Assembly (NCBI RefSeq): GCF_006345805.1
Contig: NW_021832279.1
Location: 1-64,000 of the forward strand
From: Octopus sinensis
Taxonomy: Eukaryota
Reading direction: 5' to 3'
DNA length: 64,000 nucleotides
The notes below the pieces were generated by a model. That model was not told where the DNA came from and did not search any database. It saw only the letters and a program-made list of their open reading frames with translations. The position numbers and the translations under genes were made by a program. Of this stretch, positions 873 through 33,253 are shown piece by piece (positions within the stretch are counted from its first letter, which is position 1; each line of letters opens with the position of its first letter).

Positions 873-878
873 TCAATC

Positions 879-2600: not shown

Positions 2601-2889
2601 AATCAATCTGTTGTTAAATGCTTTCAAATAATAAAAAAGTTTCAAAATATTATAAAAATTATAGTAAGAAACAAATATCCTGTTAAATCGAAAAATTCAA
2701 AAATTAATAGTCTGGCCCGCGTTTTACTTTTTTTGACCGAACAAACTGGAAAGTTAAAATTAATCAGAGATTAAACGGCCAGCAAGCCGGATGGAACAGC
2801 TATTCCCACGCACAACGGCCAACAGGATCCTTATTTTGAATTTTTTAAAACACAATTTTTTTCTTTTTCATTTCACCAACAAGCACTTT

Positions 2890-5161: not shown

Positions 5162-5834
5162 TGTATTTTATTACTCGCACTCAATTAACAAATAATTCTT
5201 AACCAAAGTAGGTGTGTGACCCCGACCTCTGTTCTCTGATATATGCGGCCACTCCAATGCCGAATCTCCCCAACTTATGGGTTCGCGGGACACATTCTGG
5301 ATGATCTCATCCCCCATTTTGGTCTAAGTAATGATTCGGGAAATGTACTTTGAAAAATCCAATGTACTTGTCGGCCGCCAGTCTCTCCAAACTGTTAGGG
5401 TACGTGTTCTCCGCCAGGGACTTGACTCGATCGGTGACGTAGCTAGCGTGGGGAAGGAGGTAGGATTTGACTAAGAGAGACACCCAACCTCGTGCCCCAG
5501 AGACAGCAATCCACATGTGGCTCCGTAGCAGGCGGGTGTGGAGGAATGAGAACTTGAGAGAACAGTCTCCAACACTCTGCACACCCTCAACTTGATCTGG
5601 GTAATATCCGAGTCGAACAGACTGCATGATCCCACTTCTTACCTCACAATCTTCTCCATCGTGGACACAGCAAAGTCCCTGAGTATCCATTGGTTGTGGA
5701 AGTGCAGCACAAATCTCCTTAGTGACAATACAACTGAGGACACAGGAGTTCGTCCAACTGGGAGTAAGGAATGAGACTACATATTGTTCGACGTATATTT
5801 TGTCATTCCTGATGACAGCATTGAATAATATATA

Positions 5835-7269: not shown

Positions 7270-8440
7270 TATAAGGATTACACAAGGCAATGTTCTCTTG
7301 AGTCTGCCACATGAATACTCCCCCCCCCCTCAGATATGACCAGTGGGAACATTATCGAGGCCACTGAGGGGTCCATCGACAGAGTAGCCAGTGCCTCCTA
7401 TGTGTTGCGTGGGTTTTCTGATTCTTAATTTGTTGCATAGCATGACATAACTTATACAACAAACATTAAATTAATAACTAAAATATGTGAAGAAATAAAA
7501 TATAAATAAAATTTTTTGTTCATGGGTGTATAATCCTTTATGCCGCGGATGCAAAGAGGTAAAGCGTCTCCCCTCTCAAAAAAGTGATTCGTCTGCCCAA
7601 AGGACAAAAGAAAAGCTTGAAATTGCGTATCATCGAGACTGATCCTGGATAAGTCGACTTGAATCATTCCCGATCTACTGACACTTTGACGTTTCTGAGA
7701 TTTTCCGCTGTGACGCAGAACGCATTTGAGCTTATTTTCCTGTAGATGTTGATCTTTGTTTGATTTATCGCTGTGATTTTCCATGTGAAAGTCCAGTCAA
7801 ATCTAAACACGTAGAAAAACAATATTTTAGTTTTGGAAACTCAATTAAGAATACAATATTTATACTTTGATTTTTATTGTTGAATAAAAGTATATTTAAT
7901 TGACCAACAAATACCAAACTCTCGCAACCAAACATCTTTTGCCCTGTCACATTCAAAACCACGGGGAACGGTTTCTCCGTAAAAAAAGTCGATTGGTTCT
8001 ACGCACGTGGAGAACTCGCATATTGATTTTCTGATTTTCATAGTATGACTCAAATCTTAAGACGAAGATTATGAATCCTCAGTTGGCAATGGTTGGAAGG
8101 GTGTTGAGGAGGTCGATTTTTATAGTAAAACTCAAATATTCAGACTACGATTATAAATCCTTAGTTTGAGATATTTAGAAGAATGTCAAACAAGTTAATA
8201 TAGTCGACAATAAAGGGTTGCAATTCGAAGTTCGTACCTATAAATTTGATTTTTGCTGTTACAATTTGAAGTTTGTAATAGTCAAATTGAGTTGAAAATG
8301 GTATAGTTTTGATAATCAAAATCTGGTTTATAAAGAGGGGTTTTTCTTGACATCGGCATCATAAAATTTGACTCTATCTTAAGTCAATCACGAACTTTTG
8401 AAAGTTCATCACCATGCATTCTAAAGGTTTTAAACAATGT

Positions 8441-8770
8441 GAATGAATGAATTTTTTTATTAAAACGGAAAAGCCGAAAAAAGAGAGAGAAAGTTAATGA
8501 GACAACGTATGCCTCTTCTCCTTTGTTTTCCTCTTTTTTTTAATTCGAGATTCGAGAGGAAAAGGCTCTCTCAAGAACACTTCCAACCGTTTCCGTCGCG
8601 TCTTCCATCTCTTGAGGGATGGGTTGGTCCAGCTAGAGTCCATTTGCCAATTTGATGGCATATCGTCTCGTCTTTTCGAGCTTAGCGATAATTCCATCCC
8701 TCTCACCAGTAGGGTATCATCCCTCGAAACCGTAGGTAAGCAATGGTTCCAGACCATCCATCAATTTACC
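8441..8770 (-). mobile_element. 3' end of a Jockey/I-like LINE with (ATTC)n tail
   Basis: 8441-8560 closely matches 51620-51740, the 3' end of the Jockey-like element. Confidence 0.75.
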
Positions 8771-10860
8771 ATCATTTCTTAATAGATAACTATTTGTTGC
8801 TGATTTATCGAAATTATTCTCCAATCCAGATGATTCAAAGTAATAATTCACATCTTCCATCATCCGGCCAATGTCTTCTCTTCTTTGGACAATAGCTTCA
8901 AGTCGTCAATGAATAGGAAGTGATTTGTAGAAAATGTTAAGGAATTAATGCCACCAGAATTTATCGATATATTTGGATATTTTGAAGATAAAAGTCTACT
9001 TAACGGATCCAAAACAAGTACAAATAATTGGGGCAACAGAGAGTCGCCTTGGAGTATACCACGTTCTATATTAACAGTTCCCAGCTGTTTTTTTCCCAAT
9101 ATCAAAGAGACTTTCCAGTTTGGAATAATTGACATAATAAAACTAGTTATCCAATTAGGCAGTCCAGAGTTTTCGAGGATTTCAACAAGAAAATCATGAT
9201 CAACTGAGTCAAATGCTTTCTTGACGTCGATCCATGCACAAAATAATTTATTATCGTGCGCTCTGTTGACGCATCTGTTTAAAAGTGCAAGTTCTTTTGC
9301 TCCTTGACAATGTCGTTTAGTTCCAAGCTGGTACAGAGTTATCAAGTTGTAAGTGTCGGTATATATTGCAATTTTTTTCATTCACACACTTTGTAACCAG
9401 TTTGTTTACAATAGACACCTTTTTGTTTAGGATTCGAATCTGGTCTGTGATTGTTGTCGAGATTCTTTCAAATTCTTCCCTTTTGGATTTTTTGTAATTG
9501 TAAGAACATAAAATGTCAATGACTTTCTTCTTTTCTTCGTCTTTAATAGTAGACATAAAGTATTTCGATATTCATATATCCTTTTCAGTCAAAGACTCAA
9601 TTTTATTTTGGATTCTCTGCTTCCAATTCGTTTTAATTGGATCTCTCATTGTAATTTGTTAATACACACATTGCGCGGAATATATCGGCCAGTTTTACAT
9701 TAACACATTTAGTGACAAGTTTATACAATTTCGGCATACAAGTTATAGGACGTAAGTCCTTCGGGGTCTCACAATCATCTTTTTTAGGAATCAAATACTC
9801 TCCATCAATTATTCGGGTTATCCCGTGACGCAGAAATCCATGTAATGACTCCATCTTCTTAATGGAAAAGTTATATATCCCGTCACACCCACATGTCTTC
9901 CAGTCAGGAAGATACTTAATAACATTTCCAAAAAACTCTTCCGTGAACTCTGGAAGCATATGTTCAGAACAATTAGTTCGTTTTTCAACAACGTCATATG
10001 ATTCAGGCTTCTCATTTCTCTCGCTCCAGACTTTTTGCCAAAAAGAGACACATTCTTCATCATCAAATCCATACAGCGTCACTTCCTCTTTCATTGTTAA
10101 GTCTCGATAGAATCTTTTTCGATTTAATTCGAAGCACTGATTATCCTTACAAAATTGCTTCCTTGAATTATGAACTTCTATTTTCTTCATGTTAATTCTA
10201 ATCAGGTCTTGCAATAATATCTGAATCCTCGACAATCAGGTTAGTTGGGAAGCTGTTAAATTACTTCATTAATTGTTTTTTTGCTACAGTCGGAAAATGT
10301 GTTCTCTGCCTGATGACTCTCTTACTAATCGCCACTGTACTTCTACCCCTCTCGTGTTTACTCTTATTTTCTTCCAATACGACAGGCATTCGCTTTCGTC
10401 AAACATAAGTTCTGCGACGTTTCTTCATTGTTTAATGTTAAAAAAACGTCGCCGGTTGAGTTCAAAACACCAATTCTCTTTCTGCTTTAGTGAGTCTTAG
10501 TTTTTTCTCAACAATATTTATTTCGTCTCTAATGCAAGCAGATATCTTTCCAAGTTCTCCTCTCTTTAACTTTCAGAATCCGTATTTACTCAGGGTATCT
10601 CTCGTTGCCTCATCGAACTTTGATTTTCCATTGGAAAGTTAGATTTTGTTCCCGACATTTTGCTTTAAATTCGCAACATCCTTGACGTAAGGAAATGTTC
10701 TTTAAAAGCTCAGGCGATTATAGACAATCCACTTCGTGGTATCCTTTTGAATTTTGCATTAGCCACCTCATTAGTCCAGTTGATCATGTTTATTTTCGTT
10801 ATTTGATCGATAATACGCGTAACGATCACAAATTAGCAGGCACTCCAAGTGTGACTCTAG
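8770..10860 (-). mobile_element. Degenerate R4/Dong-like non-LTR retrotransposon (RT)
   Basis: FELNRKRFYR, WKTCGCDGI, LRPITCMP.LYKL, AWIDVKKAFDSVDH, GILQGDSL.P.LF, NHFLFIDDLKL. Confidence 0.82.
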
Positions 10861-11046
10861 ACTGGGGGAATGAGTAGCCTATTTTTGATCACACGGTCTA
10901 CGTTATTGATGGAAACCAGAATTCAGAAAATGATTTCTAATTATCTAATATGGATCTAAAAAAACTAAAAACTAAAAGAATTAAAATCAATTTTAAAATA
11001 TAATACCATTCTTTTTAGTGTGTTGTTGTATTTATCAGTGTATCAG

Positions 11047-11450
11047 ATGTTCCACAATGACATTAATGTAATTGAGGATGAGGCATATTTGTAATATTTG
11101 AATACACAGTTCGAGGATGAAACTATTCTTGAGAGATTGTGTGCCTTGACTGAAATATTCCCTCAATCATTTCGGGATTTTGTATGGAATGTTTCCGAAA
11201 CAACCAGCAAAGTGACGATCAGTGTCATTTCTCGTCTGTCCACGATAGCATGGGGAGTCACAACTTCTCTGATAATTATTGTTCTCCCCGTAATGCTTGA
11301 AAATGAGAGATTTGCTGTAACTAATCAAATCGAACAACAACAAAGACAGGTATTGGTTATATTGAAATATTTGTACAGGTCTTACTTGGACCTAATGCTT
11401 CTTCTGGGTCTTTTAGAAGTGTACCTCCCCCTCAATTAACTCGAATGTGA
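11047..11450 (+). CDS. TOMM22: Mitochondrial import receptor TOM22, intact; exons 11047-11082, 11110-11349, 11379-11450
   Basis: EDETILERLCALTEIFP, TM segment AWGVTTSLIIIVLPV, QQQRQ|VLLGPN; 27-nt GC-AG and 29-nt GT-AG introns restore one frame. Confidence 0.9.
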
Positions 11451-11643
11451 TTTAGAATTTTAACTGAATTTGTTTTAAGAGTTGGTTTTAATAATTATTT
11501 GTTAATTTGACTATGAGTAAATCCCCACTACTATGTTTCCTGAGACCTTTATTACGCGATAGTAGTAGATTCTATTAAAACGTTAAGCTCAGTCAGATGT
11601 AGTCGAAATTTGATATTTTGCTAAATACAGAACATAAATATAT

Positions 11644-11915
11644 TCAATCCCATTGGTTGTAGTAATGGTCGGGCTGATGAGTTTTCACGAAGCTGATTTC
11701 AATGAGGACCTTTCCTACTCCCAACTTTTTGCCAAGTCTAATCATACGTGCCGCCTTTTCAACCTGAGCAGTTTTTTTAAATGGAAGTCTGATTTGAACA
11801 TGAGGCATCTATCTCTGTTGAAATTACTTTTTGAACTAATTTTAGTATTGACAAGACCATCTGTTCCAAATGGTTTTCCCACTTCTCGCCAAGTTTTCTT
11901 TTGTATTTCGACCTA
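11644..11915 (-). other. Unidentified terminal exon-like ORF convergent on TOM22
   Basis: Open frame PHVQIRLPFKKTAQVEKAARMIRLGKKLGVGKVLIEISFVKTHQPDHYYNQWD*; family not recognised; 17 bp missing in copy 2. Confidence 0.3.
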
Positions 11916-11919
11916 ATTA

Positions 11920-12380
11920 TCATGTCTAAATGTGACATCTATAAGGGTGATCCACTTGCCTTATTAATGTTTGCCCTCTCTGTTGACCACACCGCTCGTA
12001 ACTTATCTTACAAAGTAAATTTCTGGTATCTGGACGACGTGACTATTGGATAACTCACTGATATGGTTTCCAAGGATGTCTCCAGAATCATTTCTGGTTC
12101 CTGAAGACTGGACTCTCCTTAAATAGCAGCAAATGTGAACTCGTAAATATCTCTCTACCCAGGCACTCTTTTTCGTGCATTCTCAACCATTGGTTGCCTG
12201 ATCAAAGAGCTGCGGTTCCCGTCGAACAATGATTGGTTATTCTTGGCATGCCAATCTTCAAAGTGGGGCATAGTTAAAGCCTTGTAAAGAAAGTAGGATA
12301 AAATTAAGCTGTTAACTGATCGAATCCGTGGTCTTGGCTATCATTTGGCGTTTTTCCTGTGAAGAATTTTCTTTTTGGAA
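11920..12380 (+). mobile_element. Heavily degraded CRE-like RT fragment
   Basis: KGDPLALLMFALSVDH...VNFWYLDDVTIG; frameshifted. Confidence 0.75.
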
Positions 12381-12594
12381 GACGATGAAACCGTACCTTC
12401 TACATTAAAGCTCAATTGAAAATTTTTTTATTCCTTTAACAAACTCAATGAGCTCTCAGAATACTCCTCTCTTTGCCGTATTTGGAATACACTTGCCCTC
12501 GGTTTTATGTGACGAGCTGTGGACACATTTTCTGGAAAAATACTAGCAAAAAATCCTTGTTTTAGTAGTGGCTAAAAGGTGTCGGAGGTGAATT

Positions 12595-13440
12595 ACTATT
12601 CCAAACGAACTAAAAAGATATAAAAAGTCCAAGTTCCACCAAATCAGAATATTGTCCATTCTCTGTTGGGGGATCCGTTAGAACAAGAGCATCAACCGAT
12701 TGACCGACTTTCTTATAGAAAAGCATATAAGCGTTGTTGCCCTAAGAGTGGAGGATTAAGCGAACTTTAATAGCGGATTCTCCCATTCCCCCATAACACT
12801 CGTTGGGAATGTCATTAGGGTTGAACATGTTCACTGTTGAATCGTTGAATGAATACCACTGAGAGGGGTGAGTCAATTCTTTGATAAAGCAGTAGTAGTG
12901 GCCCGCTTCCGAATTCCCAGAATGAACAGTAACCCCTATCAATTTAAATTGAATGTCTTCACACGTCCCTATCTGATCTGACAAATAAACAGAAAGCCCA
13001 ACCCTCTAAAAGATTCGATTGCATGTATTTGGACATGTCCAGAATGAGGAGGAAGGAGAAATGAATGTTAATCTTTTTTCGACTCATATTCGTCACGTCG
13101 AATGCATATCGCATCGTGTTTATACACAAAATGTTTGGCAGTCGTTGAAAACAGTCTCTCTTCTGAGTTCGTACTTTTTTATCACACGGATCACACGTGT
13201 ACATATTAGCGCCCTCCGACATGTTTACTTGAGTAAACTTGTCCAGTGATTGCGAATTGTAGTAGATTATTATACACATAAGTTTTCGACATCCATGACC
13301 TACGTTTAATGTTATAAAACTCTTCATGACAAATACTCCCGTGAGGACAGTCCTAAGCAAATAGAGACTACTTTCCTTCGCTGTTGGGCAGAACATATTC
13401 CCCAAAGTGTCTAAGGACATGCTAAGCAGTGAGAGCCAAC
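12595..13440 (-). pseudogene. USP34: USP34-like deubiquitinase pseudogene, 3' part of catalytic domain, truncated at 12595
   Basis: EGANMYTCDPCDKKVR..INTMRYAFD..KINIHFSF, LIGVTVHSGNSEAGHYYCFI, WYSFND, ECYGG, AYMLFY; frameshifts. Confidence 0.85.
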
Positions 13441-14044
13441 CGTTGAGCGACAACTCGCCTACTTAAAATAAATAATTTATTTTTACCAGATTAAATCTAA
13501 TTAATTAAAATTTCAACAATTTTTTTTACTTTAATCCTTATTATGACTGATTTTGAACTGCTTAAAAGCCAAAGAGGTGGCAAACTTTTACTACACCGGA
13601 ACTCGTCTACGAAGAAAAATATTTTAAGGGTAAATAAAATAAAATTTTAAAACAATTACTTTTTATTCTGAACTTTTAAAGCAAATCAAACCATCAATTA
13701 GCTTAAAATAGCAATCTACTTCAAATTCATGAAAATTTTCACATGCTATTCTCAGTTCAAGTTCCTTTTTGCAGTCTGTCGCAGACACTTCAAGATACCG
13801 TCCTGACTTAATTTGTGTCATTTTCACAAAAAGTCTCTGTTCTTCCCTGGCCAAAACATTGACAAAAGCTGCCAAATTTGGGTGCGCTCTGTTAAAAGAA
13901 CTGTTCAACAGCTTATGCCAACCTTCCAATGAATTGGTCGTCCTGGGCATTGACTTTAATACCCGATAAAAACAACTCCAAAAACTGACGTCATAAGATG
14001 GGTCAGCGATAAATTGGTTTTTAAAATAAATCAAAAAATTCTCC

Positions 14045-14240
14045 GAAAAAAAGATTATCCCGAAAGCCTGGAACAACAAAGAGGTTTGTCCTGAAAATCC
14101 CCGTCCGTATCGAAAATGCGTCGGGACAACGGCGGAACATCGGGAGAGGCTGCGCAAACTGCTGGGGGAGGCTGGGATCACCTGAATTCTTCTTTCTTTT
14201 GGCTGTGACGGTGGTTTTCTGGTTTAATAATAATAATTAT
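14045..14240 (+). mobile_element. ~200-bp 3' fragment of a LINE with (TAA)n tail inserted in the MULE ORF
   Basis: Ends RERLRKLLGEAGIT* + GACGGTGGT..GGTTTAATAATAATAAT; same C-terminus and 3' UTR pattern as the LINE at 26900-27680. Confidence 0.7.
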
Positions 14241-15046
14241 TATCTGTTGGTTGTTTTCTTTTTCTGTCGCATCAAGAGAAAATTTTTCAAATTCCAATAA
14301 AACATTTTCCACAGGAATAAAAGCTAAATGGTAGCATTTCCTCAATAATTTTCGTTCCCACGATGAAACGTTTTTGTAGGCTTTCACAAGACCAAGACAT
14401 TGTATTTTCCGCCATATGATTTGGCCAAAATGGAAATTGCAGCCAAATACATTAGAAGACGAAAAAACTGATTTTGTGGAGTTAATTAACCCCTTTTCAA
14501 AATCAATTAAAATAATTGCTGGTGAAGTAACAACAAGTGTTTTTATTTCTTCAAATAATGCACAGTAGGAATTTTCTATTTTGTTGAGCAAAAGAGCATG
14601 CGCAAGAGGCCAGAATTTACCTAAGTATTTTCCTTGTATTGTAATCATTTGTTCGAATTGATTAGGCACGCTTTTAAAGGTACCATCAATAACCCAGACA
14701 TCTGATTTTCTCAAAATGTCAACCTGATAATCCGAACAAAAAATGACGTAACGATTTACATCATTAATTCCAGAATCCTTGCGATAAAAAATTTCGCCCC
14801 GATCATTATACCACAAACTTTCAGGAATTTCAGGAATGGTCGGAACAAAATTTGGTATCAGTGTTTCTCTTTCCCGTTGAACGAGACGAGTCAATGAACG
14901 TTCCTTTGGCAAGATTTTAATGACGTCAACATTGGCTCCAATGAGGCTTCTTGACACCACATTCATAGTTCTGTCTTCTGACGCCTTTGCGGCATCTTTC
15001 AGGTCAGAAACTAGTTTCATGCTTTTTATCTCATGATCCTCTAAGG

Positions 15047-16608
15047 CAGGTGTTCTCAACCGGGGGCGAATCGCCCCCCTAGGGCGAAAATTTTGTACAA
15101 GGGGGCGATAATTTTGTACAGGGGGGCGATAATATATTTAATAAAAAATAAAATTTATATTTATTAAAAATTGTTTAATTAGAATATTTTTAATGGCAAG
15201 CCTAATAATTTAGACTCAAAATTTAATGAAATTACTATTCTTCTTCAAGGAAATTTTGTCAACATGATTGATTGCAAAAGAATAATGAAAACATTTGAAA
15301 AAAATTATTGCTTTATCGACATAATTTTCTAAAATCAGTTCCCACCCCTGCCGGTGCGGATCTACTATGGACGTATACGGGCTCCATGCCCTCTCCTGCA
15401 AGAAAAGCGCGGGTCGTATTCCACGCCATTCGGCGATTAACAGAATCATTCTCGACTCACTCGAAAAGGCCGGCTACCCTTCTGTCCTTGAGCCTAAGGG
15501 TCTCGACCGTGGTGACGGGAAAAGGCCGGACGGCTCTACGTTGTTCTCGTTTTATTCTGGGAGACCTTTGGTCTGGGATTCCACTTGTGTGGATACCTTC
15601 TCAAAGTCTTTCATCAACGAATCGGCCTCTCTTGCTGGGTCTCGTGCTAATAAGGCTGAGCTTTCGAAGTGCCGGAAATATCAGTCTTTGATGGATGACT
15701 TTTGGTTTTGGCCAATCGTTGTCGAGACTTCCGGCGTCTTTGGCTCCGGGACCCTCACTTCCCTAAAGAAATTGGGACATCTTTGTTCTTCGCGGTCCAA
15801 GGACCCTAGGGAATTTACTTTCCTCATTCAGAGGATCCTGCTGGCTGTCATGCGTGGCAACAGCTGTTCCCTCCGTCTCGCTGGGAGAATTTATTAGTTT
15901 GTTGACTTTACTTAGTAGTTTGACCATTAAAAAAAAAAAAAAAAAAAATATTTTGACATATTGTCAACATTTGACGGAACTAGAAGCGGATATATCTCTT
16001 AGATTCAAAGATTTGTTTGATTTGGAATTTGAAGCATGGATGATTGATCCGTTTTCATGTGTGCCAGAAGATATGAACGAAACAATCCAAGAAGAGATAA
16101 TTGAATTTAAATATAATGAAGAATATATTCACAGATTTCAACAGGATGGTATCTCTAAATTTTGGCAATCAAAAGATCTACAAATGAAATTTCCAAATTT
16201 ATGGAAGGAAATGAGTAATGTACTATTGACATTCCCTACCACTTATTTGGTTGAAAGTGGATTTAGTTTTGTCAATCATAATACACAATGTGAAAAAAAT
16301 AGACTGGAAGTGTGTTATAGAGGCGATATACGCCTAAAGTTGAGCAGAATTAAACCCGACATAGAATATTTAGCGAGTAAACATCAATATCAAGGGTCTC
16401 ACTAATAATTTTTAATAAAAATTCAATTTTTTACATTTGATTTATAATTTTATATTTTGATTTTTGAGTTATGTACAAAAAACAACCAATTAAGGGACAA
16501 TGCCAAAAAATTTTTAAATTGTAGGTGGACAAGGGGGCGATAAAATTTCAAAGGGGGGCGACAAAATATCTAAGGGGGCGATGAACAAAAAAAGGTTGAG
16601 AATGCCTG
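15047..16608 (+). mobile_element. Non-autonomous Buster-type hAT (copy A) carrying a CRE fragment
   Basis: TIRs CAGGTGTTCTCAACC / GGTTGAGAATGCCTG; 8-bp TSD CTCTAAGG (15039-15046, 16609-16616); C-terminal remnant FPTTYLVESGFS..DIRLKLS. Confidence 0.95.
15330..15945 (+). mobile_element. 5'-truncated CRE-like fragment (CCHC+RLE) with poly(A), inside hAT copy A
   Basis: HALSCKKSAGRIPRH..KRPDG..LVWDSTCVDT..VVETSG. Confidence 0.88.
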
Positions 16609-18458
16609 CTCTAAGGGGCCATGATTATGAGCATTTTTTGTGCTCAACTTGTTTTGAGCATCCACCGTGCACCTCGCCCTGCATTCTCGATTTCTGCACC
16701 TCCAATAGGTAAGACCGTCTTTTTTTCTATCTGTATTATACAAATAGTTCCGGTGTAGTAAAAGTTTGCCACCTCTTTGGCTTTTAAGCAGTTCAAAATC
16801 AGTCATAATAAGGATTAAAGTAAAAAAATTGTTGAAATTTTAATTAATTAGATTTAATCTGGTAAAAATAAATTTTTTATTTATTTTAAGTAGGCGAGTT
16901 GTCGCATAGCCTAGAGCAGGCATTCTCAACCTTTTTTTGTTCATCGCCCCCTTAGATATTTTGTCGCCCCCCTTTGAAATTTTATCGCCCCCTTGTCCAC
17001 CTACAATTTAAAAATTTTTTGGCATTGTCCCTTAATTGGTTGTTTTTTGTACATAACTCAAAAATCAAAATATAAAATTATAAATCAAATGTAAAAAATT
17101 GAAATTTTATTAAAAATTATTAGTGAGACCCTTGATATTGATGTTTACTCGCTTTATATTCTATGTCGGGTTTAATTCTGCTCAACTTTAGGCGTATATC
17201 GCCTCTATAACACACTTCCAGTCTATTTTTTTCACATTGTGTATTATGATTGACAAAACTAAATCCACTTTCAACCAAATAAGTGGTAGGGAATGTCAAT
17301 AGTACATTACTCATTTCCTTCCATAAATTTGGAAATTTCATTTGTAGATCTTTTGATTGCCAAAATTTAGAGATACCATCCTGTTGAAATCTGTGAATAT
17401 ATTCTTCATTATATTAAATTCAATTATCTCTTCTTGGATTGTTTCGTTCATATCTTCTGGCACACATGAAAACGGATCAATCATCCATGCTTCAAATTCC
17501 AAATCAAACAAATCTTTGAATCTAAGAGATATATCCGCTTCTAGTTCCGTCAAATGTTGACAATATGTCAAAATATTTTTTTTTTTTTTTTTTTAATGGT
17601 CAAACTACTAAGTAAAGTCAACAAACTAATAATTCTCCCAGCGAGACGGAGGGAACAGCTGTTGCCACGCATGACAGCCAGCAGGATCCTCTGAATGAGG
17701 AAAGTAAATTCCCTAGGGTCCTTGGACCGCGAAGAACAAAGATGTCCCAATTTCTTTAGGGAAGTGAGGGTCCCGGAGCCAAAGACGCCGGAAGTCTCGA
17801 CAACGATTGGCCAAAACCAAAAGTCATCCATCAAAGACTGATATTTCCGGCACTTCGAAAGCTCAGCCTTATTAGCACGAGACCCAGCAAGAGAGGCCGA
17901 TTCGTTGATGAAAGACTTTGAGAAGGTATCCACACAAGTGGAATCCCAGACCAAAGGTCTCCCAGAATAAAACGAGAACAACGTAGAGCCGTCCGGCCTT
18001 TTCCCGTCACCACGGTCGAGACCCTTAGGCTCAAGGACAGAAGGGTAGCCGGCCTTTTCGAGTGAGTCGAGAATGATTCTGTTAATCGCCGAATGGCGTG
18101 GAATACGACCCGCGCTTTTCTTGCAGGAGAGGGCATGGAGCCCGTATACGTCCATAGTAGATCCGCACCGGCAGGGGTGGGAACTGATTTTAGAAAAATT
18201 ATGTCGATAAAGCAATAATTTTTTTCAAATGTTTTCATTATTCTTTTGCAATCAATCATGTTGACAAAATTTCCTTGAAGAAGAATAGTAATTTCATTAA
18301 ATTTTGAGTCTAAATTATTAGTAGGGCAATTTTTTGCCTAAAATGCCTTTTTGCACCAAAAGGTCTATTTATTTAAATAATTAATTTAAGCTATAATTTA
18401 ATTAAAATAGATTTATCTACAACGAGTTATAAATGCCTTAAATGCTTAAAAAATTGTT

Positions 18459-18540
18459 AAGGTCCTAAAAAATTTTTTTAAGGTCCTAAAAATTTTTTTA
18501 AGGTCCTAAAAATTTTTTTAAGGTCTTAAAAATTTTTAAA
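18459..18540 (+). repeat. ~21-bp subterminal tandem repeat (AAGGTCCTAAAAATTTTTTT) x4
   Basis: Directly visible; related motifs at 21327-21380. Confidence 0.85.
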
Positions 18541-18621
18541 ATAAATTATTTTTAAATGTTACAAAAAAATATTTTAAAAATAACAAATTAGGCACGCTAT
18601 AAATTACTTTTTTGTGTTCAA

Positions 18622-20058
18622 ATGCCACGTGTACGTTCTACAATAAAGTCTAAAGCTCTAAAAGCCTATGAAACTTACGTAAAAGAATTCACAGTGATTA
18701 AAGGCAGTCTATATTGTAAAATATGTATGATCTACGTCAATGCATCAAAAAAATATTATATTGATCAGCATAGACAATCTACAAAACATCTAAAGCTTTT
18801 GAGTAATTTAAAATTATTTTTTTAGATAACAATGAAGGATTCCAACAATCCTTAGATTCCCTATTCAACGGTCAAACCGAAACGGAAGACTTTCAGAGTA
18901 TGCCGATGGAAGTTGCCAAAGCCTTTTCTGAAGCAAACATTCCTCTTCATAAGCTCAATAATCCAAGCTTAAAGGGATTGTTTGAAAAATTGAATATTTC
19001 GCTTCCTTCCCAGTCAGCCTGTCGCAATTGTATTCCTGCAATCAGTGAACAAAAATTATCCAAGTATAAAAGTGATCTAAGGTTAACAAATGATTAATTT
19101 TTAGATCTCAAAAGATTTTTATGGTTGTTGACGAGGGTGACGTAAATGGACAGAAGTTTGTAGTTGTTCTCATTGGGAATATCGCTTATCCAGAGAAGAC
19201 CTATTTAATTTCGTGTGAACCTTTATATGAATCTGTAACTGCTAACACAATTCTTCAGATTATCGATGAAGAGATTAAAAAATTCGAGATTATACGCAAT
19301 AATTTTCTTCTTTTTCTTTCTGATGCAGCCCCGTATATGATTTTGGGTAGTTTGTTGAATTATTTTTAGCCGGAAAAACATTGAAAATGCTTTATCCTAG
19401 GATGTTCCATGTAACATGTGTTGCACATTTGTTACATAATTGCTGTCTCAGAGTAAAGGCGTATTATTCGGACGTTGATAATCTTATTGCGACTATAAAG
19501 ACATCAATAGTGAAAAACAAAACTAGAAAAAAAATGTTTTCTACAATTGGTTATCCGCCCGACGTCATCATAACTAGATGGGGTAGTTGGCTGCAAGCAG
19601 CATACTATTATGCAAATAATTTTGTATCAATTGCTGAAATTGTGGAGAATTTCAAAGACGACGGAATATTAGTTAAAAAAGTAAAACAAGCAATTGAATC
19701 GCCAACCTTAAGAAAAAGTCTAATGGAAATAAATGAAAATTATCAGATACTTAATCAAATATTGAAAAAAATGGAATCCACAAGTTATACAATAAATGAT
19801 GCACATTCAGATCTTTGTTTGTTAAAATTTCCGTCTGATAATGCAGAAATAAATGAATACATACAAAAAAGATTACACAAAAATGACATAGAATCAATTA
19901 TAGAAATGGAGAAAAGTAATATCTCCCCTGAAGAATATGGACTAATAAGAAAATGTCAGTGTACATCATCAACCGTTGAAAGAGCATTTTCTATGCTTAA
20001 AAAATTAATTACTAAAGATAGAGGTTTCAATGCGGAAAATGTCAAAAATTATTTAATA
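18622..20058 (+). CDS. hAT transposase with three 23-nt introns (18803-18825, 19082-19104, 19347-19369); last 5 codons displaced to 21251-21268
   Basis: Spliced frame is open: zinc-finger YCKIC..QHRQSTKH, MVVDE, LSDAAPYMILAGK, VTCVAHLLH, TRWGSW, SSTVERAFS. Confidence 0.88.
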
Positions 20059-21245
20059 TGTCGCGTCCCACACAAGCTACCCATCCCATGGTGGTTACAT
20101 GTCACCTGTCAATAAATAATAATGCCTGTCATGGTGACTGTCAAATTTAATAATTAATTTAATTGCATTGATTTCTAATCAGAAAAATTCAATATAAAAT
20201 CACTAGCATCCAAGTTGTCTAGCATGTTAAAGTTTGATTAAATCTTTCCACGATGCCCTGAAACAGATAAATATTGTGTCATTACTTGTGATTGAGGATG
20301 ATTTGGTCTTCCGTAAATATGTTGGATTTTGTTTTTCGTGCAAAAAGAATCGAGATATTTATTCCTAAACTCAGTTCCATTATCTGTTTGTAGAATCTCG
20401 CAAAAGCCGATTTCTGAACAAATTTCTTCGAAAGCCTCACAAATATCTAGATTCCAATATAAAACATAAATATACTTATTGCAGATTTATTTTTAACTCC
20501 TTTACAAATGGCATACTTACTGTAAACATCAATGACGGTAAATATCCATATGTAGCCATCGTTCGAATCGTTAAATTTTTAACGTTTATAAGGTCTGCTT
20601 GGAATCGTTCATTTGATCTTTTGGCAATCACATGGTACTTAGAATCTGAAACCTGCCATATAAGTTTTTTATTTTATACTTTAAGTGGAATGGAAAACTT
20701 GCATATTGAGCACACTTTGACGACTCGTTCGATAATTTTACGCTTTATTGTAAAATAGGAGTGTAAACATTCCTGTTGCAGTTTACGAATTCCAGAATGG
20801 CTATTCCGGTGAATAGAATCTGCAATAGTTTGCATCTCACTCTCATTATCCATGCAAATAACTAGTTTGTGCTTTTGAAATCTTTCGTCTTTGAGGTATA
20901 AGCAGTCATTAATGACAATAAATTTAGTGGATTTTTTAGTTAATTTATATTTTATTTATCTTGAAGATGTCTGTACAGGTTGACCATTTAAAATATTGAC
21001 TATAGTATGATATTCTGAGATATTTTTTACAAAACCTATTATTACATATACAGGGGCAAACATTTTAAAGAGGACATGTTGAAAATTGAATAATAACGCT
21101 AAAAATATTAAATATGCCCACACGAGTAACGAATGATTAAACCACATTAATTATGACATCTGACAGTCAATGACCTCGTAAAAATGATTGATTGACAGGT
21201 GACATGTAGCCAGCATGGGATGCGTAACCACCATGGGACGCGACA
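20059..21245 (-). mobile_element. Ginger2/TDD-like DNA transposon (HHCC + rve integrase) with three mini-introns, degenerate
   Basis: TGT...ACA ends, ~55-bp imperfect TIR, 5-bp TSD TAATA; HRNSHSGI..CSIC, QADL, QTDNGTEF, PQSQ|GIVERFNQTL; introns 20653-20679, 20447-20475, 20258-20285. Confidence 0.85.
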
Positions 21246-21581
21246 TAATACCTTACTATAACAAATAATTTTTTACGACTTTTTGATTTAATACCTTATT
21301 AAAATGTGCCTAAAAATGTAGAATAAAGTCCTAAAAATTAAAAATAAAGTCCTAAAATGCCTATTTTTAAGGTCCTAAAAATAAATTTTAAGTGCCTGAA
21401 AAAAATTGCCCTAATTATTAGGCTTGCCATTAAAAATATTCTAATTAAACAATTTTTAATAAATATAAATTTTATTTTTTATTAAATATATTATCGCCCC
21501 CCTGTACAAAATTATCGCCCCCTTGTACAAAATTTTTCGCCCCTAGGGGGGCGATTCGCCCCCGGTTGAGAACACCTGGCC

Positions 21582-22310
21582 TAGAGACTACTTTCCTTCG
21601 CTGTTGGGCAGAACATATTCCCCAAAGTGTCTAAGGACATGCTAAGCAGTGAGAGCCAACACGTAACTTGGATCATTATGGATTGACCTGAGTTTGTCAC
21701 ACACTGTTGCAAAGAAATCCCCACTTTTTGGAATGTGTCAACCCAGGAGAGTAAAGACAAGCAGACGACTTGGCCTGCTTCTGCATTTTGGAACATTTTT
21801 GACGTCTTTTGTGGGAAAAGTAAAGATCAGTTCCATTAGTTTGAAATAAATTTCTATTTTTCGTGTTTAAAGAAAGACCTTCGAGCTGAAGAAATCTTCA
21901 AAATGAAGATGTTTAATTAATTTGCAAGCCAAACCGAGAACATGGTCGTGGATCTTTTCAGCATAGACTGAAGCCGTAAAGTCCATCTCCATGAGTGTAT
22001 TAACCACTTTAAAAGAAAGATCTGAGTATTCCAGTAATACATCCATAGCCTATAATAAATATAGTGAATGATGCCTTCAATTCCGGAATAAGTTTGGCAA
22101 AAAAGAAAAAATAGCTTGTACAGGAGCTTGTGCATCTCTCCGCGGAAGACATGTCAGTATTCTCGATAGTATACAATTGTGTTCAATAATAATAAGTTAT
22201 ACAATTTCCGGCAGATCTTCCAAAACAATTTCCCATGAATTGACCAAACTGTCGAAAATAGCAGTCAGCCAACAATTATCCTTTTCTTTACATCCTCCAA
22301 CGCCAAATAA
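21582..22310 (-). pseudogene. USP34: USP34-like pseudogene, upstream part; Cys-box region appears deleted
   Basis: PKCRSRPSRLLVFTLL resembles USP34 PKCKSHSSRAAAYDLL; contiguous with 13362-13440 via a 79-bp duplication; stops and frameshifts. Confidence 0.7.
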
Positions 22311-23802: not shown

Positions 23803-26435
23803 CAGTGCACGACAAAAGTAACCGGACAAGCCAAAATTTCCATTATTTTAAGTCATTTTAAAACTTTTTTTCACATAAATCACCCTTTGTACATTAATTT
23901 ACACGAAAAACAATTTTTTACATTTTTAATTTAATCTTTTTTTCAATTGTACATTAAATTTAAAGCATAAATAATTACGATGTGCGACAAAAGAAACCGG
24001 ACAGTTAAAAATAATAAAAATTAGTATCTAGAATTGCCTCCTTTGGCATTATACACTGCGTAGCTTCTAGCCTTCATTAATAAAATTAGTTTTGTATGAA
24101 CTCTATCGGGATTGATCTCCAAATTTGGATAATTTCCTCTTTTAGGTCATTATGACATGTTGGGGTTTTTTCATCTATTTTTCTTTTCATATATGCCCAG
24201 ACGTGCTCAATGGGATTGAGATCAGGTGACTGGGCGGGCCATGAAAGAACTTTGATTTGATTTTTGTTGAAATATTCCGTCACAATTTTTGCTTTGTGGG
24301 TGGGAGCATTGTCCTGTTGGAATGTGAAATCCGTTAAATTCATTTTTGCTGCAGATTCCATCAGGTTATTCGCCAACAAATTCACATATCGTCCACTGTT
24401 TAACGTACCATCAAAAAAACTAAATTCCTCACTCCTTTGTATGAGATACATCCCCAAACCATTGTTTTACATTTTCCATGTTTTACAGTTGGCAAGATAT
24501 ATCTAAATAAATATCAAATCAACTACTTTAAGGATTCCCCCTTCTTTCGGTAAACTATTCGAGATTTTTTATTCATAGATAATTGAAAAATACAAGCTAC
24601 AACACGTTCTCCGCTCTGCCCCCTGCTTTATAAACCCTGAACTTCTCAAAGAACTGGAAACAGGGCTGAAACACAGTGCCGAAAATCTCTGCAACATTCG
24701 TTTTGACGAAGCCTCGTGGACCCAAGCCACGCTTCTAATACGATTCGGAGGCATTGGTCTCCGCTCTCCAGCAGATATTGCATTACCCGCTTTCCTCTCT
24801 TCTCGATTGTCGTGTGACTCACTGGTGGTTGCTGTTCTCCCCCTTTCCACTGAACGTAACGCATCCTCCTGGTATCAGATGGCAATCGAAATTTGGTCGA
24901 ACAAAGGCCTCAAGACACCTGCTAACTCATTCTCACAGAGATGTTGGGACGACCTGCATTCCATGTCAATTTACCACCACTTGGAAGAGGTCTCTGATCA
25001 ATCTCGTCTTGCATGCCTTAGAAGCGCTTCACAAAAACAATCCGGAGCGTGGCTCAATGCATGTCCTATCCCTTCAGTCGGAAACAAACTGGACGACGAG
25101 ACATTGCGAATTGCAATCTCCTTACGCCTTTGCATGAAGATCTGTCGCCAGCACCGCTGTAGTTGCGGGGTTTCCGTTGACGAATTCGGACGGCACGCTC
25201 TCTCATGCAGACGCAGTGCAGGCCGGTTTCCAAGACATCATGCAATGAACCTAATTGTCAAGAACGCTTTGCATGCAGCTGGTTTCCCGGCACAGCTGGA
25301 GCCTCCTGGTCTCATCCGCACAGACGGAAAAAGACCTGATGGGATAACAATCTTCCCGTACACCAACGGGAAGTGCCTTGTTTGGGACTGCGCCTGCACC
25401 GACACCTTCTCAGAGACAAACCTGATCGCCTCAGCCTCCTCTCCAGGATATGCTTCACAGAACTACGAAAAAATTAAAAAATTAAAATATTCAGAGCTCA
25501 AGGACAGGTTCATAGTGCAACCGATTATTGTGGAGTCATCTGGAGTCTTCGGTCCGGAATCAATCTCTTTCATTAGGAAACTTGGATCCCTGATCTCGGT
25601 TCAGACGAAAGATAGAAGGGAGACCGAATGGCTGTTTCAACGCCTTTCAACAACCGTTGTCAGGGGTAATAGCCACGCTATCCTTTCTGCTCTTAAGCAA
25701 CCTTAATTAACTTTTATTTTCTTTTCAAATAAATAATACATTGAAAAATTGATTCGTCTGAGAAAATTGCGTCCGAAATCATTAAAAAAATTTTAGATAT
25801 GTTCATCTATCCTTAACATTTTTTTTGGCGAGAAAGGGTCTTTTCATGGTTAATCTCCCAAAATAATTATTTTCATTCAATAAACGAATTATTGTCCTTT
25901 TGGAAATGTCTTTTCCAAACTTTTCATGTACAAAGGAACGTAAAACGTTTGAACTTTCATATGTATTTTCTACACTATGAGCAGTTAGCTCATCAGTTTC
26001 AATCTTAGAAAGTATTCTAGCTCTCCCAGAAACTGGAAGTCGTGAAATTATCATATTTTTCTTGTATTTTTTCAAAAAATCGTGGATCGTCGATTTTTTG
26101 GTACAAGTAAGAGTGCTAATGCGTCTGATAGACATTCCTTGATTTTTAAAGGCAATTATTTGTCCTTTAACAAAATCTGACATGTGTTTACCCCTAAAAA
26201 AGGTTAAAAAATGTAATTTTGGCGAAAAACTGAAAAGTGTCCGATTACTTTTGTCACCTACATTTAATAAGTGTGCTTTAAATTTAATGGATTATTCAAA
26301 AAAAAGAAATTAAAAAAGTAAATATATTATTTAATGAATATTTTAATTAATAAGAAGCTATTGTTTTAAAAAAGCATTAAAATTGGCTAAAATAATGGAA
26401 ATTTCGGCTTGTCCGGTTACTTTTGTCGTGCACTG
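23803..26435 (-). mobile_element. Tc1 (DD34E) transposon interrupted by CRE; transposase has a 24-nt intron (24503-24526)
   Basis: TIR CAGTGCACGACAAAAGTAACCGGACAAGCC, TA TSD; FSDES, MVWGCIS, FQQDNAPTH, WPAQSPDLNPIEHVW. Confidence 0.93.
24592..25739 (+). mobile_element. 5'-truncated CRE-like retrotransposon
   Basis: GGIGLR, CSCG..HALSC..RH, KRPDG, VWDCACTDT; TSD ATTGAAAAAT (24582-24591, 25740-25749). Confidence 0.9.
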
Positions 26436-27688: not shown

Positions 27689-28926
27689 CAGTGGTTCCCA
27701 ACCTGAGTACTGGAAACCCAAAAAAGATAGAATCTATTGTATAAATACTGAATAGATTTTTCTAGTTCAGTCTTTTCCCTGGCAATTTTATTCAGGTCCC
27801 ATTTAGCGGCCCTGTGACAGGTACAAGTTGCAAATGGATTTCACTGTATTTTTGATTTTCACTGTATTTTGCACCACGAAATACTTTGCATCAAATCCAA
27901 AATTTGATTATGTAATGGAGGTGGTCATTCGGACAATAAATTTTATTTGAGCCAGAGATCCTAATCACTGTCAATTTGACAATTTTCTCAATGATATTGG
28001 TTTTACTTACGGATAACTATATCATTTCAGATATGAATTGTTACAAGGAGAAAATAACAGGACTGCTTCGACAATTTGAGACACGTTTTGAAATTTTCCG
28101 TAAACTTAAAACAAATTTATTGTTTTTTGAGCACCATTTACTGCAATTATTTCTGATCTTGCAGCTAACTTACAATTGGAAATAATTGATTTAAAAGCTT
28201 ATATTTATTTATTGTTAATTTACACATATAGAGTAATTTACTAGAAGTTAACAAAGCCATCTATCCGAAGTGGACCCCGCCAACATAATTGACGTTGCGT
28301 TGTCTCTCACGATAGCAACGGAGATCAACTGGAGAAGCCACCGGGTCTCACGTGTGTCGTGGCTTTTTAATGTGGCTAAGCGTCCAAGCTTCTTTAGGAA
28401 GCGAAGCGATTTCCCACTTATTCCTCCAGTTGTCTCGACCACAATCGGACAGAACACGAATCGATCTCGCAGCGCTTCATATTTTCTCTCCTTCGCCCTC
28501 ATCGTTTTTTCCGCGGCATACAGTCTGTCCACTGCGCTCCCGGCAATGTTGGACGGGCAGAGAGTGTCCACACAGGTTGCGTCCCAGACTAGGGGTTTCC
28601 CCTCTTGTTTAAAATATAACTCAGATCTAAAAAATAAATTTACCATGGTAAGCTTAGACAGCTTTTATAAATATCTCTTGACGAAGTATCCGAACTTAGC
28701 CTTAGCTACGAAGATTTTTTTAATTTTTGGAAGTACATATTTATGTAAACAACTTTTTTCTTTAATGAACATAAACAAAACAGGATTTCGATTGAGGCTC
28801 ACAGAAACTCATCTAAGTGAGATTCTAACATTGACAGCAACTCAGGATTTCACTCCAAACATTGACGCTATTATAAAGAAAAAAAGATGTCAAGTTTCTG
28901 TAACATGTTTTAATTGTAAAAATTAA
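27689..28926 (+). mobile_element. Buster/SPIN-like hAT remnant with left TIR (copy 2), containing the CRE fragment 28197-28607
   Basis: CAGTGGTTCCCAACC preceded by ATCTACGC; otherwise identical to 1-872. Confidence 0.8.
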
Positions 28927-28932
28927 TCAATC

Positions 28933-30654
28933 CTTGAAATTGTCCGATGTCGTTTCCCTGCCTTATATCCGATCGTCCATCTGTCTTACGCCTCTCCCAG
29001 CTGTCTCTTGTTTGCCGACAATGTTATTATGTCCGAAACTGGCATCCAACAAGGCGACCCTCTTGGGCCCCTTTTATTCTCACTCGGGGTTGATCACATT
29101 GCCCGCCAATTGTCATCCGAGGTAAACATTTGGTACCTCGATGATGTTACTCTCGGCGGGGCTTTGGAGACCGTCAGGAAGGATATGGAAAAAATTATTT
29201 CTGGTTTTGCGTCTATTGGGCTCGCTTTGAATGGATCCAAATCCGAGCTAATATGCTTGTCTGCGAGCCCTTCGGAATTCAAATTAATTTTTTCCACCTT
29301 ATCTCGCTATATTGAAGGCCTGGGCATCACCCAGCTTGATGACCTCATCATTCTGGGTTCCCCAATCAATAGCAAGGCTACTAAGAAGGCTTTATGTGGC
29401 AGGCTCGAAGAATTGGAAATTTTAATCTCCCGCATTTTCAAACTCGAATCCCATTTAGGCCTTTTCTTGCTAAAGAACTATCTCTTCATACCGAGGCTAA
29501 CTTATCTCATGCGCTCATCGCCGTGCTTTCACGAACAAAATCACTTGTCTCGTCTCGACAACATGGTCTCTGAAGCTCTTGAACTCCTCGTAAATATCAA
29601 ATTCAAACCTTCAGACATGCGACGGGTTAATTTACCTATTCGTTACGGGGGCATCGGCATTCGTTCTTGTGCTGATTTATCCCTCCCATGTTACCTTTCC
29701 TCGTTGTCTGCCTCTGCTACTTCCTTCAACTCTGTTCTCTTCCCCTCCTCTGAACAGCCCGAGTTGTTGGAATATGCGGCGGGTGTCAACATGTGGATTT
29801 CTCGTGGGCTTAAAATCCCGGACGTCCCCTCAGTTCAAAAGAACTGGGATGAGATACATTGTTTGCATACACTCGAAGATATCCGCCTATGTGCTGACCA
29901 GTTTCAGTTGGCAAGCATCAATTGTGCCTGTCAACCCCACTCGGCCGATTGGCTTGACGCTTTGCCGATTTCCTCTGCTGGAATGTTGCTGGACGACGAA
30001 TCTGTCCGCATCGGAATCTGTTTACGGCTTGGCATAGAGATTTGCCTGCCACATCAGTGCAGATGCGGAAAGGTCATTGACAGGAGAGGGCTACACCCCC
30101 TCTCTTGTCGCCTCAGTACCGGCCGTATACCCAGACATGCCGCCTTGAATGATATTGTCAAGCGCGCGCTCAACGCCGCTGGATTCCCTTCGGTCCTAGA
30201 GCCGGTTGGTTTAGACCGTGGCGACGGAAAACGTCCCGACGGGTCCACGCTATTCCCGTTCAAGGGGGGACTCGCTCTCGTTTGGGACGTGACCTGTGTC
30301 GACTCGTTTTCCTCGTAATCTCTCATGGACTCTGCCTCCCGCCCTGGCTCAGCCTCCGCACATGCCGAAACAATAAAAATAACAAAGTATGCCTCATTGG
30401 AGAACACCTGCCTTTTCGTCCCCCTGGCTTTCGAAACGAGCGGGATAATCGGCCCAAAAGCTCTTGAGTTCCTTTCGGAAATCGGCTTGATGATCTCAAG
30501 GAAGAGTCACGAGAGACGTGAGTCTAGTTGGCTTTTTCAGCGCATTTCGTTCGCGATATTGCGCGGAAACTGCCTATCTATTCGCGCGTCCTCTCAATCA
30601 AAGAATTAACATCATAAATTTACTTAATTAACAATTATTTTAGTTTAAAAAAAA
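28933..30654 (+). mobile_element. CRE-like retrotransposon (duplicate of 879-2600)
   Basis: Identical 436-aa ORF. Confidence 0.92.
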
Positions 30655-31818
30655 AATCAATCTGTTGTTAAATGCTTTCAAATAATAAAAAAGTTTCAAA
30701 ATATTATAAAAATTATAGTAAGAAACAAATATCCTGTTAAATCGAAAAATTCAAAAATTAATAGTCTGGCCCGCGTTTTACTTTTTTTGACCGAACAAAC
30801 TGGAAAGTTAAAATTAATCAGAGATTAAACGGCCAGCAAGCCGGATGGAACAGCTATTCCCACGCACAACGGCCAACAGGATCCTTATTTTGAATTTTTT
30901 AAAACACAATTTTTTTCTTTTTCATTTCACCAACAAGCACTTTATTCACAAATGAAAAAATTTGAAGATAAACTTAATGAAGTAAAACAAATTATTATAT
31001 ATATCCGAAACAATGCATTGAGACATAGACAGTTTCGTACAATTCTTTCCGGTAGTGAAATATCTGCTGAAGACATTTTATACCATGCACAAGTTCGATG
31101 GCTATCACAAGGTGAAACAGCATGTCGTGTGCTTGATTTACGAAAAGAAATATCAAACTTTTACTCATTACACCAAATACATTTAATACTATATTCGATT
31201 ATATTTTGAAACAATTTGAAGAGCGATTTAACGAATTTAAAAAAATTGAACTCAAACTTTAATTAACTGCAGCACCACATACTGTTTCGATTAAGAATGC
31301 GCCATTGGAATTTTAAATTGAATTACATTGGAATTTCAAATTGAATGCGCCATTCGGAAACACATATTCATGTGAGTCTACATTTTCCAAAATGAAATAT
31401 TTAAAAAGTCAATATAGATCTCGGATAACGGATGCAAATTTAGAATCATGTTTGCGCATAATGATATCTACCCTACCAGTGGATTTCAATAAGCTCGCAA
31501 AAAATACCAAAGATCCTGGCCTTCATTAGAATAACTTGTATAATACATTTCTTTTAATTAACTTTCCTTCTTTCTTATCTTTTTTCCATGAAATAATTAT
31601 TTATTTTAATAATATGATGTCCCTGATGAACGAGAGCATTTCCTGTCCAAGAACTCATTCGGTCTCGATGACAATGGGCAACTTATGCGGTCACTTTTAA
31701 TAATTAAAAAAATTACTATATTTATATCGAAAAAATAATGCAGAAAATGTGCGGCCGTGGAAGAGAAGGAAAAATAAATGCTATGCGGCCGCAAACCCAA
31801 AAAGCTTGCGCACCCCTG

Positions 31819-33215: not shown

Positions 33216-33253
33216 TGTATTTTATTACTCGCACTCAATTAACAAATAATTCT

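Follow-up and report, generated by a model that had tools for sequence, protein, structure and literature searches.

Candidate 23–33-nt Introns in the Genes of Five DNA Transposon Families on a Contig Filed as Octopus sinensis

Introduction

Introns in the genes of DNA transposons are already documented, and so is the loss of such introns. The transposase genes of the P element, Ac, Tc1/Tc3, and Minos have them in the usual short-intron size range of their hosts. Those of Ginger1 carry one to four GT-AG introns (PMC2836005), and the accessible portion of a study on CACTA elements describes transposase genes of variable exon number in which intron loss is the main shaping factor (PMC4158355). 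Animal introns shorter than 30 nucleotides (nt) are, in the available parts of two papers, reported solely from myxobolid myxozoans and from Dicyema japonicum (PMC13644364; PMC6736024). Here we analyzed a stretch of 64,000 nt (the window), VCDQ01008639.1:1-64000, which belongs to a record of 112,285 bp in assembly GCA_006345805.1 and is filed as Octopus sinensis. At least five transposon families in this window (TAGGG-hAT, Ginger2-like, Tc1, Tigger, and Buster hAT) have genes interrupted by segments of 23–33 nt. It appears fairly probable that these segments are U2-type GT-AG introns of the host's kind and that they were gained within the present lineage, the contig being most probably that of a dicyemid.

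Results

The hAT Transposase Gene

The first case is a complete hAT element, whose terminal inverted repeat (TIR; TAGGGCAA) is of the short YAGNG type. Starting at the ATG (18622), the frame of its transposase passes from 0 to 2, to 1, and again to 0, switching at three GT...AG segments, each of exactly 23 nt. When these segments were excised together with a nested element and one copy of its target site duplication (TSD), an open reading frame (ORF) of 1386 nt and 461 amino acids (aa) was obtained, which, nested insertion aside, is otherwise undamaged. The segments have 9–22% G+C, in comparison with 32% in the exons, and a T-rich 3′ end followed by AG; the retention of any of them leads to a stop codon.

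The predicted spliced protein had 285 relatives, the best of them 40–47% identical across 100% of the query and 455–464 aa long. In the alignment with 13 homologues, junctions 2 and 3 were free of gaps, and junction 1 was located in a variable linker just after the conserved CxxC...H...H finger. The conserved YNK of the C-terminus was recreated by joining across the excision of the nested element. The residues C32, C35, H50, and H56 of the zinc finger, D155, D219, E430, and the ERAFS (ER.FS) motif were invariant. Among Pfam families, DUF659 alone was found in the spliced protein, below threshold, and Dimer_Tnp_hAT was weak, in 2 of the 14 alignment members; the search of the hAT profile against PDB sequences gave no match.

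The insertion of the element is recent, as its TSD is perfect and an empty site exists in an arm that is 99.5% identical, as a single ATTATTAG at 15203-15210 (...gagtctaa ATTATTAG gcttgcc...). The arms belong to an inverted duplication (15039-16613 and 16912-21586), in which 1.6-kb arms with 99.5% identity are separated by a spacer of about 300 bp. The duplication carries fragments of non-long-terminal-repeat (non-LTR) elements and of hAT C-terminal sequence, and the hAT element entered only one of its arms.

The Nested Ginger2-Like Element

The element nested in the hAT gene has TGTNR termini, an AT-rich TSD within the 4-5-bp range, and an integrase with H2C2 and DDE motifs, as described for Ginger2/TDD elements; the features of the termini and of the TSD were taken from PMC2836005. 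The domains detected by Pfam were Integrase_H2C2 and rve. Three segments interrupt the integrase gene, and the spliced product is free of gaps at the three junctions when compared with homologues of 410–460 aa (best identity, 49%), covering positions 2-102 of the 102 of Pfam rve. The gene ends prematurely after NQTLTC, before the part in which a GPY/F region would be sought, and its frame is shifted once, within an A5 run at ~20600. Considering the truncation and the frameshift, the element is taken to be non-autonomous.

Tc1, Tigger, and Buster Copies

The Tc1 copy was classified from its transposase domains alone, by matches with DDE_3 and HTH_Tnp_Tc3_2 of Pfam and with SB100X, the catalytic domain of Sleeping Beauty (2.7e-31). 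With respect to SB100X the unspliced translation is 6 aa longer, and the spliced one is 2 aa shorter. The copy is interrupted by a non-LTR retrotransposon fragment (24579-25703, + strand) with an open frame of 375 codons, located between FSDESIFQ and RIVYRKKGE, and is short of about 25–30 residues after KNVKDR.

One of the Tigger copies (Tigger A) has an upstream exon ending in ...VEWMDSIESK at 6315 and a downstream exon, ...GGFFNDALI, beginning at 6536. Between them there is a miniature inverted-repeat transposable element (MITE), whose TSD, GTAATTT, includes the donor site, and the donor has been duplicated in this way. Since the TSD contains the donor, the MITE would have entered an intron that already existed. 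If the upstream donor still serves splicing, the intron now measures 220 nt. HTH_Tnp_Tc5 of Pfam (7.8e-11) runs across the junction, and the copy is cut short beyond its first catalytic region. A second copy, Tigger B, is uninterrupted at the equivalent position, where it reads YIELRGGFLADN.

Two other observations concern the Tigger copies. Tigger B has an intron-like segment of 28 nt at 63106-63133 (− strand; GTAGATTACC...TTTTTTAG), located between ...FNFCSK and RFSLLLCSN, with the frames one base off. Tigger A with its MITE, together with a carboxypeptidase gene, is included in a direct duplication of 12.6 kb (1-12598 and 28055-40638; 99.8% identity), representing a segmental duplication of very recent date or else a redundancy of the assembly.

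The Buster-type transposase gene is decayed, with two 1-nt frameshifts. It had 355 matches, the best of them with 42% identity across 98% of the query, and is of the FAM200/ZBED5 type. Three inserts were observed, of 30 nt (42767-42796, GT..AT, VILIYIxNKY), 27 nt (41862-41888, GTAAAA...TAAAG, KIFINLFKG), and 33 nt (41475-41507). When the unspliced translation was used as the query, gaps lay exactly over the 30-nt and the 27-nt segments in every one of the 12 homologues of the alignment, which came from shrimp, fish, frogs, aphids, a tunicate, and others. In the region of the 33-nt segment the unspliced sequence exceeds the homologues by 8 aa, and the spliced one is 3 aa shorter, with a conserved W aligned.

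Some of the 1-nt frameshifts in these genes fall in runs of A or T, namely the A5 run of the Ginger2-like gene, a T7 run of Tc1 at ~24410, and, in Buster, a short A run at ~41460. They may be errors of long-read assembly, in which case the copies would be more intact than they appear.

Common Characters and Host-Gene Controls

Taken together, 10 of the 11 transposon segments have GT...AG termini, and all measure 23–33 nt with 7–29% G+C. Five of them shift the frame, each shift being exactly compensated, and once the segments are taken out an ORF is restored that agrees with intron-free homologues, except at the 33-nt segment of Buster. Two host genes of the window, coding for ribose-5-phosphate isomerase A (RpiA) and for an M14 carboxypeptidase, were used as controls, and their GT-AG introns agree in size and composition with the transposon segments (Table 1).

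The first-pass annotation of this DNA had described the segments as introns of host style, and that label suits what the control genes contain. Its account of the hAT gene, with three GT-AG introns of exactly 23 nt and conserved motifs such as DAAPYMIL|AGK restored by their removal, agreed in every detail with the frames, the ORF, and the alignment. The introns that it placed in the Ginger2-like integrase (27, 29, and 28 nt) are upheld by homologue and rve alignments without gaps at the junctions, and the 24-nt one in Tc1 by two in-frame stops and by the length comparison; the 26-nt intron that it assigned to Tigger A after removal of the MITE was seen, as was the continuity of Tigger B at GGF. 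For Buster, the 27-nt segment and the 30-nt one, which it had reported with a broken acceptor, are borne out by the gaps in homologues, while the 33-nt segment is present with a junction that is not clean.

The borders and contents of the segments were also compared. No in-register direct repeat longer than 5 nt was found at the borders of any transposon segment, and the sequences have the splice signals alone in common. The many near-identical intron copies with TSDs that define Introners are not seen among the introns of the window.

Table 1: Positions of the transposons, candidate introns, and host-gene controls in the window.
Feature	Position	Strand	Description
hAT element, complete	18322-21413	+	14-nt TIR TAGGGCAATTTTTT / AAAAAATTGCCCTA; subterminal AAGGTCC repeats near both ends
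hAT TSD	18314-18321 and 21414-21421		8 bp, ATTATTAG; perfect, both flanks
hAT transposase coding sequence	18622-21268	+	exons 18622-18802, 18826-19081, 19105-19346, 19370-20058, 21251-21268; 461 aa
hAT intron 1	18803-18825	+	23 nt, GTAATTT...TTTTTAG; phase 1, directly 3′ of zinc finger; frame 0 to 2
hAT intron 2	19082-19104	+	23 nt, GTTAAC...TTTTTAG; junction DLR|SQKIFMVVDE
hAT intron 3	19347-19369	+	23 nt, GTAGTT...TTTTTAG; junction DAAPYMIL|AGKTLK
Nested Ginger2-like element, non-autonomous	20059-21245	-	1187 bp; ~67-nt TIRs beginning TGTCG
Ginger2-like TSD	20054-20058 and 21246-21250		5 bp, TAATA
Ginger2-like integrase intron	20653-20679	-	27 nt, in-frame, holds stop codon
Ginger2-like integrase intron	20447-20475	-	29 nt, frame-shifting
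Ginger2-like integrase intron	20258-20285	-	28 nt; splits near-universal HPQSQ|G.VERFN motif (here HPQSQ|GIVERFNQT)
Tc1 intron	24503-24526	-	24 nt, two in-frame stops; joins GESLK|YILPTVKHG
Tigger A intron	6510-6535	+	26 nt, gtaatttttactaatttatgattaag without the MITE; duplicate copy 34564-34589
MITE in Tigger A intron	6323-6509 (also 34377-34563)		187 bp; 9-bp TIR GGATCACAT; TSD GTAATTT
Buster-type hAT transposase gene	41250-43111	-	~43091-41250 from first ATG to stop; decayed, two 1-nt frameshifts
RpiA intron (host control)	50666-50693	+	28 nt, GT-AG; NTYLK|SDSKVGLGTGST
M14 carboxypeptidase intron (host control)	4940-4962	-	23 nt; KHTI|GIPKFRYFGNIHGDE
M14 carboxypeptidase intron (host control)	4013-4037	-	25 nt
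M14 carboxypeptidase intron (host control)	4638-4664	-	27 nt

Comparison with Relatives

The loci of homologues were inspected at the DNA level. Each of four loci of hAT homologues (P0001, P0009, P0002, and P0026) consists of one ORF, as long as the protein together with its stop codon, and the same is true of the locus of the closest Buster homologue (P0121, from Palaemon). The element of P0001 (L001:162-2099; ENA ERZ28668849 NODE_17601, a metagenome) is 1.9 kb long and intronless, and has a 14-nt TIR identical to that of the window element, TAGGGCAATTTTTT, despite an identity of 46-47% between the two transposases. Since it shares this TIR, it belongs to one transposon lineage with the window element but has no introns. 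By neighbour joining, the window protein clustered beside P0001 and P0002, in a radiation whose remaining members are all called as single ORFs. The first-pass annotation had proposed this comparison with the closest transposases of other species, and the intron positions of the hAT and Buster genes of the window were not found in the loci of their relatives.

Taking into account the five uninterrupted homologue loci, the one with the identical TIR included, and the absence from Tigger B of the intron of Tigger A, gain in the present lineage is the parsimonious reading and is favoured, short of proof, over the shrinkage of ancestral introns.

Some matches of the hAT protein, 314–352 aa long, were considered as exons starting at intron 2, which would have made this intron shared and ancestral. 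This was rejected, as they begin inside VDEAE and are truncated ORFs of decayed copies. The longest ORFs of non-LTR retrotransposons in the window, of 463 and 493 codons from stop to stop, are uninterrupted, which is expected because such elements copy through spliced RNA.

Origin of the Contig

Octopus introns are long, and octopus genes are not compact genes with introns of 23–28 nt. In the protein search with RpiA there was a single match of 100%, which is the gene call of the window itself, placed on VCDQ01008639.1 at coordinates identical to those used here; all the others had 45% identity or less (best foreign match, 44-45%), the top ones coming from a louse, a crayfish, a snail, and a flatworm, and no octopus orthologue was found in this search. 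The contig does not look like octopus, since for an octopus gene the proteomes of other octopuses would be expected to contain a nearly identical protein, and the search brought up none. An exact-protein look-up of a 301-aa ORF of the window gave no match. According to the available part of its genome paper, D. japonicum, the material of which came from an O. sinensis renal sac, has 36.7% GC, 49% repeats, 6.2 introns per gene, and introns with a mean length of 38 bp (PMC6736024). The window has 31–47% GC and is packed with transposons, and its traits fit those of D. japonicum. The contig is most probably from a dicyemid (Dicyema), as a passenger or contaminant of the octopus assembly. This matters when the assembly is mined for genes or repeats, as a contig filed under O. 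sinensis would apparently be that of its kidney parasite.

Other features of the window include a MULE-type transposase (13666-15137, − strand; Pfam MULE, 3.9e-11), the frame of which changes at about 14200 in a manner that fits no clean GT-AG mini-intron. Two ORFs beside RpiA, at 48642-49562 and 50032-50457 (both on the − strand; 307 and 142 codons), had no Pfam match. The tRNA and Rfam scans of the 64-kb window were empty.

Discussion

Points That Weigh against Introns Gained in a Dicyemid

Before turning to other explanations, it is necessary to collect what weighs against the view that these segments are introns gained by transposons within a dicyemid lineage. The intron calls come from the comparison of genomic sequences. 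In Buster, the 33-nt segment requires a further 1-nt frameshift just downstream, the 30-nt segment has GT..AT and not AG at its acceptor side, and the three segments are multiples of 3, two of them without stops, and could be plain insertions. Several copies are broken in other ways, by frameshifts, by the retroelement in Tc1, and by the Buster acceptor. A scan without homology was also carried out, in which GT...AG segments of 18–40 nt at the frame switches between ORFs were set against the remaining 255 dinucleotide pairs; in two such scans GT-AG ranked 186th and 83rd of 256, not separated from noise, and an earlier unnormalised scan was likewise uninformative. Because the many overlapping transposon ORFs of the window swamp the signal, these scans give no statistical support in either direction, and the support for the introns is comparative, not statistical. 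As to gain, the set of homologues is skewed toward uninterrupted ORFs, since most database gene calls cannot model introns, and the comparison covers one copy per family. Finally, the assignment to dicyemids is circumstantial, being based on traits, gene content, and the origin of the sample, and not on a direct sequence match.

Alternative Explanations

Among the alternatives, the one that survives best, although it seems unlikely, is that each transposon family inherited its introns from its ancestor and that they were merely shortened along with those of the host, without any gain in the lineage. Dicyemid host introns are reportedly at conserved positions and shortened, as Ogino et al. are said to have described in 2010. 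Old introns conserved in position do exist in some DNA transposases, for example, in Ginger1-5_HM and in the genes Gin-1 and Gin-2 (PMC2836005), and the under-representation of intron-bearing homologues in the database would hide others. However, all five loci checked are uninterrupted, including that of the element with the same TIR, the truncated hAT matches begin inside VDEAE and not at the position of the intron, and Tigger B does not have the intron of Tigger A.

It is quite unlikely that the segments are AT-rich insertions and mutations of dead copies, bounded by GT and AG by chance. The other lesions of most copies are what this explanation would call for, as are the Buster inserts in multiples of 3, one of them without AG, and the lack of enrichment of GT-AG in the generic scan of ORF switches. 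Against it, GT...AG borders in 10 of 11 cases, a length range that overlaps the 23–28 nt of the host introns, and the low G+C of all of them would have to coincide, together with five frame shifts exactly compensated; moreover, the hAT ORF, in a recently inserted element, is free of defects apart from the nested element.

A third explanation, which we consider very unlikely, is that the transposase genes were colonised by an Introner-like or MITE-like element, or by footprints of transposon excision, of which the introns would be what is left. A MITE does sit within the intron of Tigger A, and transposons are a source of introns in other organisms, as stated in the accessible sections of two papers (PMC9860276, PMC12130899). 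Nevertheless, the intron was already there before the arrival of the MITE, as the TSD of the latter with the donor GTAATTT indicates, the segments fall far below all known Introners in length, and they share splice signals alone, without in-register flanking repeats of more than 5 nt.

Dicyemids reportedly eliminate DNA and form extrachromosomal circles in development, and the ciliate Chromidina also inhabits cephalopod kidneys; even so, the removal of the segments as DNA, by programmed elimination of the type of ciliate internal eliminated sequences, has a very low probability, as the borders are GT...AG and not TA...TA, the code is standard with long ORFs, and ordinary host genes have like segments at the positions where introns are expected.

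How the Introns May Have Arisen and What They Would Do

If the segments are introns gained in the present lineage, the ancestral elements would have been intronless, and the introns would have been acquired while the families resided in it. Compared with the homologues the segments are additional sequence, and hence insertions and not coding sequence that became intronised, with no signature of duplication; traces of tandem duplication, of repair-mediated insertion, or of an Introner-like source were not found at the introns of the window. The first-pass annotation had proposed a route of gain specific to the lineage and acting on mobile elements. Gain in the lineage agrees with the intronless relatives, but a route specific to mobile elements does not find support in segments that have neither flanking repeats nor a common sequence. 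Its premise that cut-and-paste elements cannot lose introns was too strong, considering that intron loss is given as the main factor in CACTA gene structure in the accessible part of that study (PMC4158355).

A bolder possibility, which we propose tentatively, is that all the mini-introns are new dicyemid gains, that a permissive process makes introns of ~23–30 nt now or did so recently, and that transposon genes serve as its recorder with a zero baseline. In that case the introns may persist through a better expression of spliced transposase mRNA or through escape from the surveillance of intronless transcripts.

With introns of this size, the transposase would be obtainable only from mRNA processed by a spliceosome that accepts introns below 30 nt. 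A hAT mRNA that kept intron 1, for example, would be read to a stop after a zinc-finger peptide of 67 residues. Introns of 23 nt are thought, in the accessible portions of the literature, to be below the reach of most animal spliceosomes (PMC13644364; PMC6736024), and for this reason the elements would probably not function in ordinary animal hosts. A side effect of gain, if it took place, would be to lock the elements to hosts whose spliceosome takes introns below 30 nt. The first-pass annotation had likewise suggested that such introns could restrict horizontal escape.

Clear cases of recent intron gain are rare in animals. Transposon families with intronless relatives offer a clean baseline, in which each intron must be a gain. 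If confirmed, the present case would make testable the rate, the target sites, and the length preference of gain in a lineage with introns of 20–30 nt, and also whether introns aid the expression of mobile elements or their avoidance of silencing, and whether they block horizontal transfer.

Comparison with Known Systems

The elements of the window resemble Ginger1, CACTA, the P element, and the other intron-bearing transposons in that they are cut-and-paste elements relying on host splicing for their transposase. They differ from them in the size of the introns, which at 23–33 nt reach below the floor of ~30 nt long assumed for animals, in the presence of five families within 64 kb, and in closest relatives without introns at those positions.

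With the ultra-short introns of Dicyema and of myxobolids, as presented in the available parts of the corresponding papers, the segments and the introns of the window host genes share the length class, the reduced GTA...AG signal, and the AT-rich body (PMC13644364; PMC6736024). In those same parts the introns are in host genes and at conserved positions, as shown for RPS13 of myxozoans, whereas those of the window are in transposons. In the 2026 paper on short introns (PMC13644364), a text search found no mention of introns borne by transposons or of intron gain, and one of the D. japonicum genome paper (PMC6736024) found no mention of DNA transposons.

Domesticated transposase genes have been used as a zero-intron baseline (PMC3369469), and the logic is the same here, each intron being counted as a gain; the window genes differ in that they are still those of mobile elements, with TIRs and TSDs, and not single-copy host genes. 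As far as the accessible sections of the Introner papers go (PMC9860276, PMC12130899), Introners also tie mobile DNA to intron gain. The direction is opposite, as in the window the introns are inside the genes of transposons, without an intron sequence family and without TSDs. By comparison with all these systems, the new points here are an intron size class that is extreme for an animal, the five families found together, and the comparative evidence for gain.

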